NCBI GenBank assembly: GCA_950097015.1 | Contig: CATNEN010000024.1 | Location: forward strand, 6,200,001 to 6,264,000 | DNA length: 64,000 bases | Reading direction: 5' to 3' | Source: Macrostomum hystrix | Taxonomy: Eukaryota > Animalia > Platyhelminthes | Shown: one piece after another, positions 42,832 through 45,800 of the stretch | How the letters are laid out: each line of letters opens with the position of its first letter | Numbering within the stretch: position 1 is the stretch's first letter | The notes under the pieces: model-generated | Told to the model about the DNA's origin: nothing | The model's database searches: none | The model's input: the letters and a program-made list of their open reading frames with translations, nothing else | Translations under genes and position numbers: made by a program

Positions 42832-45800
42832 CTGCAGTGTTAGTAGATTAACTGACTCTTTAGTAGTTTACTACTCAAAGTAGTACAATCAGACTATGAG
42901 TCAATTTTTATAAAGAAAAAATGTTGCATAAAACGCATGGCTTTCTTAGAAACCTTCTGTGTACAACCGGACACTGGGCAAACATTTCACATTAGTCTCA
43001 GGTAGTAGGCAATGAAAACGCACCTTATTTGCCGTGCGATCGGCACGTTTTCGACGTCCCTTCCTGAAGTCCAGTCGTCTGCGTCTGAAAACACGATGTT
43101 TTAGGATTCACAATTTGACGATTCCAGCTACGTTTCCAGCTACGATTCCAGCTACGATTCCAGCTACGTTTCCAGCTACGATTCCAGCTACGATTCCAGC
43201 TACGATTCCTGCTTTGATTCCAGCTACGATTCCAGATTTTATTCTAGCAACGATTCCTACTAGGATTCCTACGATTTCCTACGATTCCAGCCTTGATTCT
43301 AGCTACGATTCCAGCTTTGATTGTAGCTACGATTCCAGCTTTGATTGTAGCTACGATTCCAGCTTTGATTGTAGCTACGATTCCAGCTTTGATTGTAGCT
43401 ACGATTCCAGCTTTGATTGAAGCTACGATTGCAGCTTTTATTCTAGCTACGATTGCAGCTTTTATTCTAGCTACGATTCCAGCTTTTATTCTAGCTACGA
43501 TTCCAGCTTTTATTCTAGCTACGATTCCTACTAGGATTCCTACGGTTTCCTATGATTCCAGCCTTGATTCTAGCTACGATTCCAGCTTTGATTGTAGCTA
43601 CGATTCCAGCTTTGATTGTAGCTACGATTCCAGCTTTTATTCTAGCTACGATTCCTACTAGGATTCCTACGGTTTCCTATGATTCCAGCCTTAATTCTAG
43701 CTACGATTCCAGCTTTTATTCTAGCTACGATTCCAGCTTTTATTCTAGCTACGATTCCTACTAGGATTCCTACGGTTTCCTATGATTCCAGCCTTGATTC
43801 TAGCTACGATTCCAGCTTTGATTGTAGCTACGATTCCAGCTTTGATTGTAGCTACGATTCCAGCTTTGATTGTAGCTACGATTCCAGCTTTGATTGAAGC
43901 TACGATTCCAGCTTTTATTCTAGCTACGATTCCTACTACGAGTCCAGCAACGATTCCTACTAGGATTTCTACGATTTCCTACGATTCCAGCCTTGATTCT
44001 AGCTACGATTCCAGCTTTTATTCTAGCTACGATTCCAGCTTTTATTTTAGCTACGATTCCAGCTTTTATTCTAGCTACGATTCCAGCTTTTATTTTAGCT
44101 ACGATTCCAGCTTTGATTGTGGCTACGATTCCAGCCTTAATTCCAACTACGGTTCTAGCTACGATTCCAGCTACGATTCCTTTTTCGGTTCCAGCTACGG
44201 TTCTAGCTTCGATATCCTTACGGTTCTGGCCCCATTTCTGACTATGAAAACTACCTTGCCTATCCAAATGTTTTCAGCTACGTTTCAGCTACGAATTTTA
44301 AACAGAAAAAGGTAAAAATATAACAAACAGATGATGATAGTTTAAACTAAATTAGGAAATGAAAGTATTTGCATTGGTAAAATAGATAAATTCAAATAAA
44401 GTTACAGAAAAAACTAAAGGCTACAATAAAACCACAGGGTGATCTAAATTGGTGTTGAAACGAAAACAGAGTAAGAAATTGAGGTAATTGTTTACTTTCA
44501 ATCAGGGAAAGCTTTGACGGCTGCTCATGCATAATTAAATAAAGTAACTGACGCGATGCCTCACGTGACCTGAGGTTGGAATGGCGGGTCTACAATCACC
44601 TATTTCTAACCGATCTAAGCCTCAAGGGTTCTCTATAATGTCTTTTTTGGTTTATAGTTTTTTCACAATTTTTTCTAATTGTATTTTCTTTTTGTTAAAA
44701 GTACAATGGAACGATTAGGAGATGTTGAAGGCATAGACTCACATGCTGCAGGCAAGGTAGCATATTGCAATGAGCAGGCCAATAACAATTAGCAGTACAA
44801 TAAGCAAGGCCACTGATAGGCCTGTACTCGACTGAGCAGTCAAACCAACTGAGGCCAGCGATTTCATGTAGTCTGAAACAGATTGTAAACAACAGCTATT
44901 GCTTGATAAAACTACCAAGGACCACTAGAAGAAGAAGGACGGGAAAATTTGTTTCTTGGAAAATTTATTCAAGGCTGACTTAATCATGAAGCACAATAGC
45001 TTGTCAAAACTATCTAGTGACTATCTCTAAAGCTATCAACAGTTTTATGCGAAAAAGTGAAAAAGTTCCTATCTCGATAGTGCATTGTTTCCATGAAAAT
45101 CTGCATTGGAAAATCAATTTTCCAAGAAACGGAGTGTCCCGTCCTTCTTCTTCTAGTGGTCCTTGAAAACTATATCTACTAGCGATAAAACATTATAAAC
45201 GAAATCAAAGAATTATTGCGACACTTTGAAGACAAAAAAACAACAATCAGATAAAATAAAATAATAAATAAAAGTGCAAACCAAAAAATTACGACAACAT
45301 TATTTTCAACTAATTCTAGGCCTAAACTGATTGGTCTTACTTTGCAAGGTACCAGGAGAGGATTAGCATAGATACCATGACAGCCACCGTCACCCAAATT
45401 GTCATCTGGGTGAGAACCCGGTCCACTGCTCGAATAGAGCGATCTTCAATGAACTCTGCAACAATATCTGCACTTTTCATTTCTGAACTCCTGGACACCA
45501 ACTTGCTAATGCTGATGCTAATCACCGCTTGGCAGATTTCTAATGCTCATGCTAATGACCGCTTGGCAGATTTCTAATGCTCATGCTAATGAACGCTTGG
45601 CAGATTTCTAATGCTCATGCTAATGACCGCTTTGCAGATTTCTAATGCTGATGCTAATGACCGCTTGGCAGATTTCTAATGCTCATGCTAATGACCGCTT
45701 TGCAGATTTCTAATGCTGATGCTAATGACCGCTCGGCAGATTTCTAATGCTGATGCTAATGAACGCTTGGCAGATTTCTAATGCTCATGCTAATGACCGC

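Follow-up and report, generated by a model that had tools for sequence, protein, structure and literature searches.

The neuregulin-like gene of the flatworm Macrostomum hystrix described in this work contains two adjacent exons, each encoding a juxtamembrane stalk and a transmembrane (TM) helix, of which either one, but not both, can join the same extracellular domain to the same cytoplasmic tail in frame. The gene lies within a stretch of 64,000 nucleotides of contig CATNEN010000024.1 (positions 6,200,001 to 6,264,000 of the forward strand), hereafter the window, to which all coordinates refer; all of the gene's exons given below are on the minus strand. One exon of the pair, exon B (44743..44872, 130 nt), is in use, as RNA contigs demonstrate. 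The other, exon A (45341..45482, 142 nt), is a candidate alternative recognised from its sequence. On balance we lean towards exon A being a regulated anchor exon, which would replace B in an unsampled tissue, stage or condition.

The two exons share an architecture and their splicing phases. Each has a length of 1 mod 3, is entered in phase 1, with one base coming from the preceding exon, and is left in phase 2, with two bases passed on. Each comprises a stalk and one hydrophobic helix, whose best 19-residue Kyte-Doolittle mean is 2.06 in exon A and 3.37 in exon B. Exon A extends from gagttcag/AA ATG AAA AGT to TGG TAC CTT GCA AA/gtaaga (slashes mark the junctions), and its product would be (K)MKSADIVAEFIEDRSIRAVDRVLTQ-MTIWVTVAVMVSMLILSWYLA-(K), or in full (K)MKSADIVAEFIEDRSIRAVDRVLTQMTIWVTVAVMVSMLILSWYLA(K), in which a charged, helix-prone stalk of ~25 residues precedes a moderately hydrophobic helix of V, M, T and W. 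Exon B extends from tgtttcag/AC TAC ATG AAA TCG to TGC TAC CTT GCC TGC AGC AT/gtgagt and encodes (N)YMKSLASVGLTAQSSTGLS-VALLIVLLIVIGLLIAICYLA-CS(I), in full (N)YMKSLASVGLTAQSSTGLSVALLIVLLIVIGLLIAICYLACS(I), with a shorter, Ser/Gly/Ala-rich stalk that continues into a very hydrophobic L/I/V helix. The exon coordinates, phases and frame argument put forward in a first-pass annotation of this DNA proved exact when checked against the sequence, and both exons do have MKS close to the start and YLA close to the end, as it had remarked. However, exon A also has in-frame alternative acceptors at 45467, 45455 and 45443, such that the acceptor at 45482 is uncertain, and the MKS common to both exons may therefore be outside the mature form.

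Downstream of the pair is a shared juxtamembrane cytoplasmic exon (43024..43084, 61 nt, ending in phase 0; product RRRLDFRKGRRKRADRTANK). It begins ttttcag/A CGC AGA CGA CTG GAC TTC AGG AAG, encoding RRRLDFRK, and these residues are predicted to give the positive-inside signal to whichever TM helix precedes them. The last coding exon (41980..42831, acceptor ctaacactgcag/GAG), whose cag acceptor follows a ctaac branch site, is coding from 42831 to 41983, after which comes the stop codon, and its product is a low-complexity cytoplasmic tail of 283 residues.

The contigs of four sequencing runs (X1-X4), all from one study of one organism with the tissue unspecified, were aligned to positions 44300-45505, a range chosen to keep clear of the flanking minisatellites, with the joints to the upstream exons at 50338 and 50679 outside its reach. 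These runs are RNA, as their contigs show splicing. In each, a single contig (961, 732, 1282 and 1153 nt in X1-X4, respectively) aligned exactly to 44743..44872 with 0 mismatches, and continued into unlike sequence at both ends. At 44743 the overhang of the X1 contig matches, in reverse complement, ACGCAGACGACTGGACTTCAGGAAGGGACG, with which the 43084 exon begins. Hence exon B is real: each of the four runs shows its boundaries, and X1 shows that it is joined to the 43084 exon. Elsewhere in this range, part of the intron following exon B (44300-44723) is covered by contigs from X1 and X2 at a word depth of 4-7, which could represent unspliced RNA, a read-through 3' end or a separate transcript; reading through the exon B donor gives ...CYLACSM and then a stop. 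The intron between A and B has no contig cover except at its repeat.

The reading frame constrains how the two exons can be combined. They are adjacent, their entry and exit phases are equal, and inclusion of both or of neither breaks the frame, as is expected of a mutually exclusive pair. Because both are 1 mod 3, the EGF domain stays joined to the RRRLDFRK tail only when one or the other is included. Reading exon by exon, joining A to B shifts the latter, which is then read as LHEIAGLSWFDC..., with a stop at 43027-43025 in the next exon, bearing out the claim that tandem joining is out of frame. With neither exon, the product is TM-less and terminates 28 codons inside the last exon. One of these stops lies 1 nt ahead of the final exon junction and the other within the final exon, so that both frame-shifted products would be expected to escape nonsense-mediated decay by the mammalian 50-nt rule. 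Exon A might be used non-exclusively, with the truncated products made deliberately: A and B together would yield a protein anchored by the helix of A, with a short Cys-rich tail that runs to 43025, while skipping of both would yield a secreted, TM-less ligand. The predicted evasion of decay is consistent with such use, as is the production of truncated soluble '3' forms by mammalian NRG1 (PMC3176322). However, there is no A-B joint in the four contig sets, nor any contig in which B is skipped, although the range to which the contigs were aligned could not reveal skipping. Deliberate truncation is a reading we consider improbable.

Set against this frame logic are several observations that count against one-or-the-other use of A and B. 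Firstly, the depth across exon A (45325-45505) was 0 in all four RNA contig sets, as opposed to a word depth of 8-15 at exon B. Hence the mutually exclusive pair that the first-pass annotation had proposed stands as regards its frame logic, but only exon B is represented in the RNA contigs of the four runs. That annotation had named exon A being without reads as the outcome that would speak against it; this outcome was found, but weakly, in contigs, at low depth and from one study. Contigs lose minor isoforms and the depth of exon B in this single study was only 8-15, meaning the absence of exon A is not demonstrable. Secondly, the 45482 acceptor is weak, with a purine-rich tract and a second AG 8 nt upstream. 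Thirdly, a 2.5-kb minisatellite in the intron upstream of exon A (45506..48041, no strand assigned; 74 copies of a 34-nt unit) stops just 24 nt upstream of this acceptor. Fourthly, homology between the exons is weak: they have no nucleotide similarity, 4% of composition-preserving shuffles score at least as well as their global protein alignment (score 24), and the matches at their ends (ATGAAA and TACCTTGC) were jointly reached by 1.2% of shuffles in a test that was post hoc. Fifthly, no orthologue or transcript fragment containing exon A was found by word and exhaustive searches of the tail, or by a word search of the exon A open reading frame (ORF).

The last two of these points need some qualification. 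The evidence that A and B are duplicates is weak, and if duplicates they are old. An old duplication would suggest that selection has maintained exon A, as a copy of such age, if unused, should have lost its frame or its consensus donor. The word search of the exon A ORF (region 23-69) against a protein collection, with candidates of 38-120 residues, was blank, but uninformative, as even transcript fragments from this species that contain the tail are missing from the collection; for exon-sized queries, moreover, full-length orthologues are shut out by the search's length rule. The exon A peptide had no match in PDB at E values up to 10. The first-pass annotation had likened this exon to the KRVLT junction of vertebrate NRG1, a resemblance of four residues that could not be confirmed, with searches of PDB and the literature being blank.

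Some of these observations are also what would be expected were exon A a former anchor exon that has recently been silenced, perhaps as the 34-nt minisatellite grew up to its acceptor, leaving the gene to make the B form alone. The depth of 0 over exon A in contig sets that cover exon B fits this explanation, as do the weak acceptor, its upstream AG and the proximity of the satellite's end. The weak acceptor is ambivalent: it is typical of regulated alternative exons, yet suits a repeat-silenced exon equally. Silencing is harder to reconcile with an exon that retains an open frame of 46 codons, a strong consensus donor (gtaaga) and the correct phases, unless it remains intact because little time has passed; and the RNA evidence for silencing comes from one sampled study, through contigs that lose minor isoforms. 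We regard recent silencing as possible, if doubtful. Were it correct, this would be an ordinary NRG-type gene with a fossil exon.

A further explanation is that the open frame of exon A arose by chance in intron DNA and that its likeness to a TM exon is fortuitous. AT-rich introns abound in short hydrophobic ORFs, and exon A has neither RNA nor a homologue to its credit. Both strands of the window (128 kb) were scanned for AG-bounded units of 100-180 nt and 1 mod 3, without stops in the frame needed, with a GTRAG end and a 19-residue hydrophobic window. Only exons A and B, with their in-frame alternative acceptors, fitted. In 6 Mb of simulated intron-like DNA, generated by an order-3 Markov model trained on the non-satellite introns of the neuregulin-like gene, there were three such units, equivalent to 0.0035 per 7 kb, and just one at exon A's own hydropathy, giving an overall range of 0.001-0.004 per 7 kb. 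Exon A is also on the right strand, beside a real TM exon and in equal phases. The GC content of exon A (0.458) is similar to that of exon B (0.469), with the flanking introns at 0.325 and 0.338; it is reached by 13% of intron windows, making it just mildly supportive as a coding signal. As no other such unit exists in the window and very few arise in simulation, exon A is very unlikely to be a product of chance. We conclude that, as judged from these sequence features, exon A is most probably a true coding exon of the neuregulin-like gene, or was one until recently.

Regulated use of exon A, the reading we favour, would have a specific consequence for the encoded protein. A one-or-the-other choice of anchor would affect neither the receptor-binding EGF domain nor the cytoplasmic tail, while swapping ~25 stalk residues and the whole TM helix, the parts that decide the cleavage and sorting of a type I ligand precursor. 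Such a swap may alter shedding, or the targeting of the precursor to cellular compartments; that it acts as a shedding switch, as the first-pass annotation suggested, is something we infer only.

Other repeats around the pair were considered as potential selectors of splicing. The intron between A and B contains an inverted repeat resembling a miniature inverted-repeat transposable element (44905..45176, no strand assigned), with 65-nt arms that are 85% complementary. These arms are matched at 90-95% by many unrelated transcript contigs. All four runs also contain a shorter version of the family, from which 191 nt are missing (joint 44940>45132). The inverted repeat is the only notable pairing in this intron, and was rejected as a splicing selector, being a dispersed repeat. 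A further pairing, A/T-rich and 19 nt long, links the A-B intron to the one following B; it looks like chance and was likewise rejected as a docking or selector element. Minisatellites, with units of 12, 16, 20, 24 and 34 nt, occur in every intron of the gene.

The identity of the gene as an EGFR ligand of the neuregulin type is well founded on its predicted domains, which comprise an immunoglobulin (Ig) domain, an EGF domain, a stalk, a TM helix, a basic stop-transfer and a long disordered tail. The Ig domain is split across two exons that were searched separately: the first half (59424..59637, 214 nt; KLRKKRLNKRRNRRKR...LRLSCAAVGSPIPRARWTKDGRDV) matched the Pfam family I-set with an E value of 0.0011 (19.4 bits, against a cut-off of 23.7), and the second half (59008..59126, 119 nt; ...LATVGNYSCEFRNLNGSTTDWLVIS) weakly matched the family ig (E 0.075). 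The LRLSC...W and Y.C motifs are visible in these halves. Directly before the Ig domain is a very basic stretch (59560-59637, minus strand; KLRKKRLNKRRNRRKR), which may be a heparan-sulfate-binding or furin-rich region. The EGF domain, also split, was matched by Pfam at E 0.07. Its six cysteines have the canonical spacing of a neuregulin-type EGF domain, with C1-C4 in the core exon (55363..55477, 115 nt; KDPTAAPASFLCESSDQTHCLNGGTCYLDRISNEPRC(V); CESSDQTHCLNGGTCYLDRISNEPRC) and C5-C6 in 50728-50679. The five best PDB matches to the N-terminal half were all NRG1/heregulin (E 0.018-0.043), with EGF/TGF-alpha at E 1.4. Phases are consistent across the Ig, EGF core and C-loop exons. A single TM helix follows the EGF domain, with a basic stop-transfer, as exon B is present in RNA, the X1 overhang extends into the RRRLDFRKGRRKR exon and the hydropathy reaches 3.37. 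Hence the gene's description as neuregulin-like was borne out by its putative I-set halves, a six-cysteine EGF domain whose N-terminal half matches only NRG1/heregulin among solved structures, its TM helix and exon phases matching those of NRG1.

The cytoplasmic tail is less informative. No Pfam family was found on the 295-residue tail ORF, and hence no Neuregulin intracellular domain; this domain marks vertebrate NRG1/2, rather than the wider NRG-type class (PMC4914847). A word search of the tail among proteins of 162-516 residues returned no relatives, and the sole match from an exhaustive search, the 1568-residue repeat protein P0001, was spurious.

Upstream of the anchor pair, the C-loop of the EGF domain is also represented by two candidate exons, both entered in phase 2 and left in phase 1. 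The alpha-like exon (50679..50728, 50 nt; CPSPYTGILCEKIDYS) has the canonical 8 residues in its C5-C6 loop, whereas the beta-like exon (50338..50396, 59 nt; CLASPHEISRYHGNCVEFQ) has an unusual 13. As both are 2 mod 3 with equal phases, they should be usable only one at a time. The first-pass annotation had joined the anchor exons to donor 50338, which is indeed a candidate, though not the sole one, as 50679 is another. Read after the alpha-like exon, the beta-like exon gives ASPRHMRSRVTTEIA and then a stop within itself; using the two in succession would thus give a soluble ligand ending just past a complete EGF domain.

The window also contains other genes and repeats. An open frame at 7181-7741 on the minus strand has a signal-like start and many KRAPGWGKR repeats, which mark it as an APGWamide-type neuropeptide precursor; no Pfam family was found. 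On the plus strand, 938-4380 is a multi-exon gene for an acyltransferase of the MBOAT family (two of its exons match Pfam MBOAT, at E 2e-8 and 4e-15), with an FYRDW motif like those of sterol or diacylglycerol O-acyltransferases. Positions 13000-38000 are occupied by ~25 kb of intergenic higher-order tandem repeat, the units of which translate as YSMSSDTQCLLILNVF....

The gene adds a member to a class already known. The combination of Ig domain, EGF domain and TM helix constitutes an 'NRG-type' ligand architecture reported across Bilateria, with one oyster gene included (Barberan et al. 2016, PMC4914847). The present gene resembles NRG1 in having a putative I-set Ig domain, an EGF domain and a single TM helix, with a TM exon that contains stalk and helix and ends just past the latter. 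In the nomenclature of NRG1 exons, E numbers are exon lengths. The names E130, E68, E59 and E103 of the mammalian gene (PMC3176322) permit a direct comparison. The EGF core exon is 115 nt here and E130 in NRG1, both 1 mod 3; the C-loop exons are 50 and 59 nt here, and E68 (alpha) and E59 (beta) in NRG1, all 2 mod 3; and the stalk and TM exons are 142 and 130 nt here, compared with E103, all 1 mod 3. The paired, alternative-looking C-loop exons recall the alpha and beta forms of NRG1.

There are nevertheless differences. A Neuregulin intracellular domain is missing from the tail, which also has no detectable relatives, and the C5-C6 loop of one C-loop candidate is 13 residues long. NRG1 is not known to have an alternative TM exon. 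Its splicing is extensive in the region of the EGF C-loop and the stalk (PMC3176322), the latter being varied by cassette exons (E24, and '3' read-through) that come before a single TM exon. An alternative anchor exon, if used, would hence be a new variant of neuregulin splicing.

A proven parallel to the anchor pair is found in an unrelated adhesion receptor. Exons 17.1 and 17.2 of Drosophila Dscam1 are mutually exclusive TM/juxtamembrane exons, and their isoforms differ in dendrite versus axon localisation, not in shedding (bioRxiv 10.1101/2020.04.30.070847). As here, they are an adjacent pair in the gene for a type I membrane protein, each encoding a juxtamembrane segment and a TM helix between a common ectodomain and tail; however, RNA proves the use of both Dscam1 exons, but of only one exon of the present pair. 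Splicing of juxtamembrane sequence is already known to set shedding by ADAM-type metalloproteases in CADM1 (PMC5385562) and UNC5B (PMC12480741). These two genes likewise offer alternative juxtamembrane sequences, but their cassette exons are stalk-only and the TM helix is kept. Exon B also invites comparison with Drosophila Spitz, which is released by Rhomboid and is without an Ig domain, as the exon B stalk and helix top (LASVGLTAQSSTGLS) are rich in small residues. Substrates of Rhomboid share this feature, and small residues at the top of a helix favour intramembrane cleavage.

The significance of an anchor swap would lie in the release of the ligand, as the mode of release decides whether an EGFR ligand acts at short range, at long range or through cell contact, and vertebrate NRG1 tunes this through stalk splicing. 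The swap would be a natural experiment on which features of an anchor govern cleavage and sorting. A bolder reading, which we think rather unlikely, is that this spiralian NRG-type gene makes two independent one-or-the-other choices, of an alpha/beta-like C-loop and of a whole stalk and TM anchor, the second switching the precursor between two routes of release or sorting. These routes might be the cutting of a charged, helical stalk by metalloproteases and the intramembrane cutting of a small-residue stalk and helix top; alternatively, the two anchors might deliver the ligand to different cell compartments, as with TM1 and TM2 of Dscam. On that reading, the combinatorial splicing of NRG-type ligands would predate the protostome-deuterostome split. 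Regulated exchange of the anchor, together with NRG1-like phases and paired C-loop exons, would point to a splicing logic that is ancient among neuregulins.

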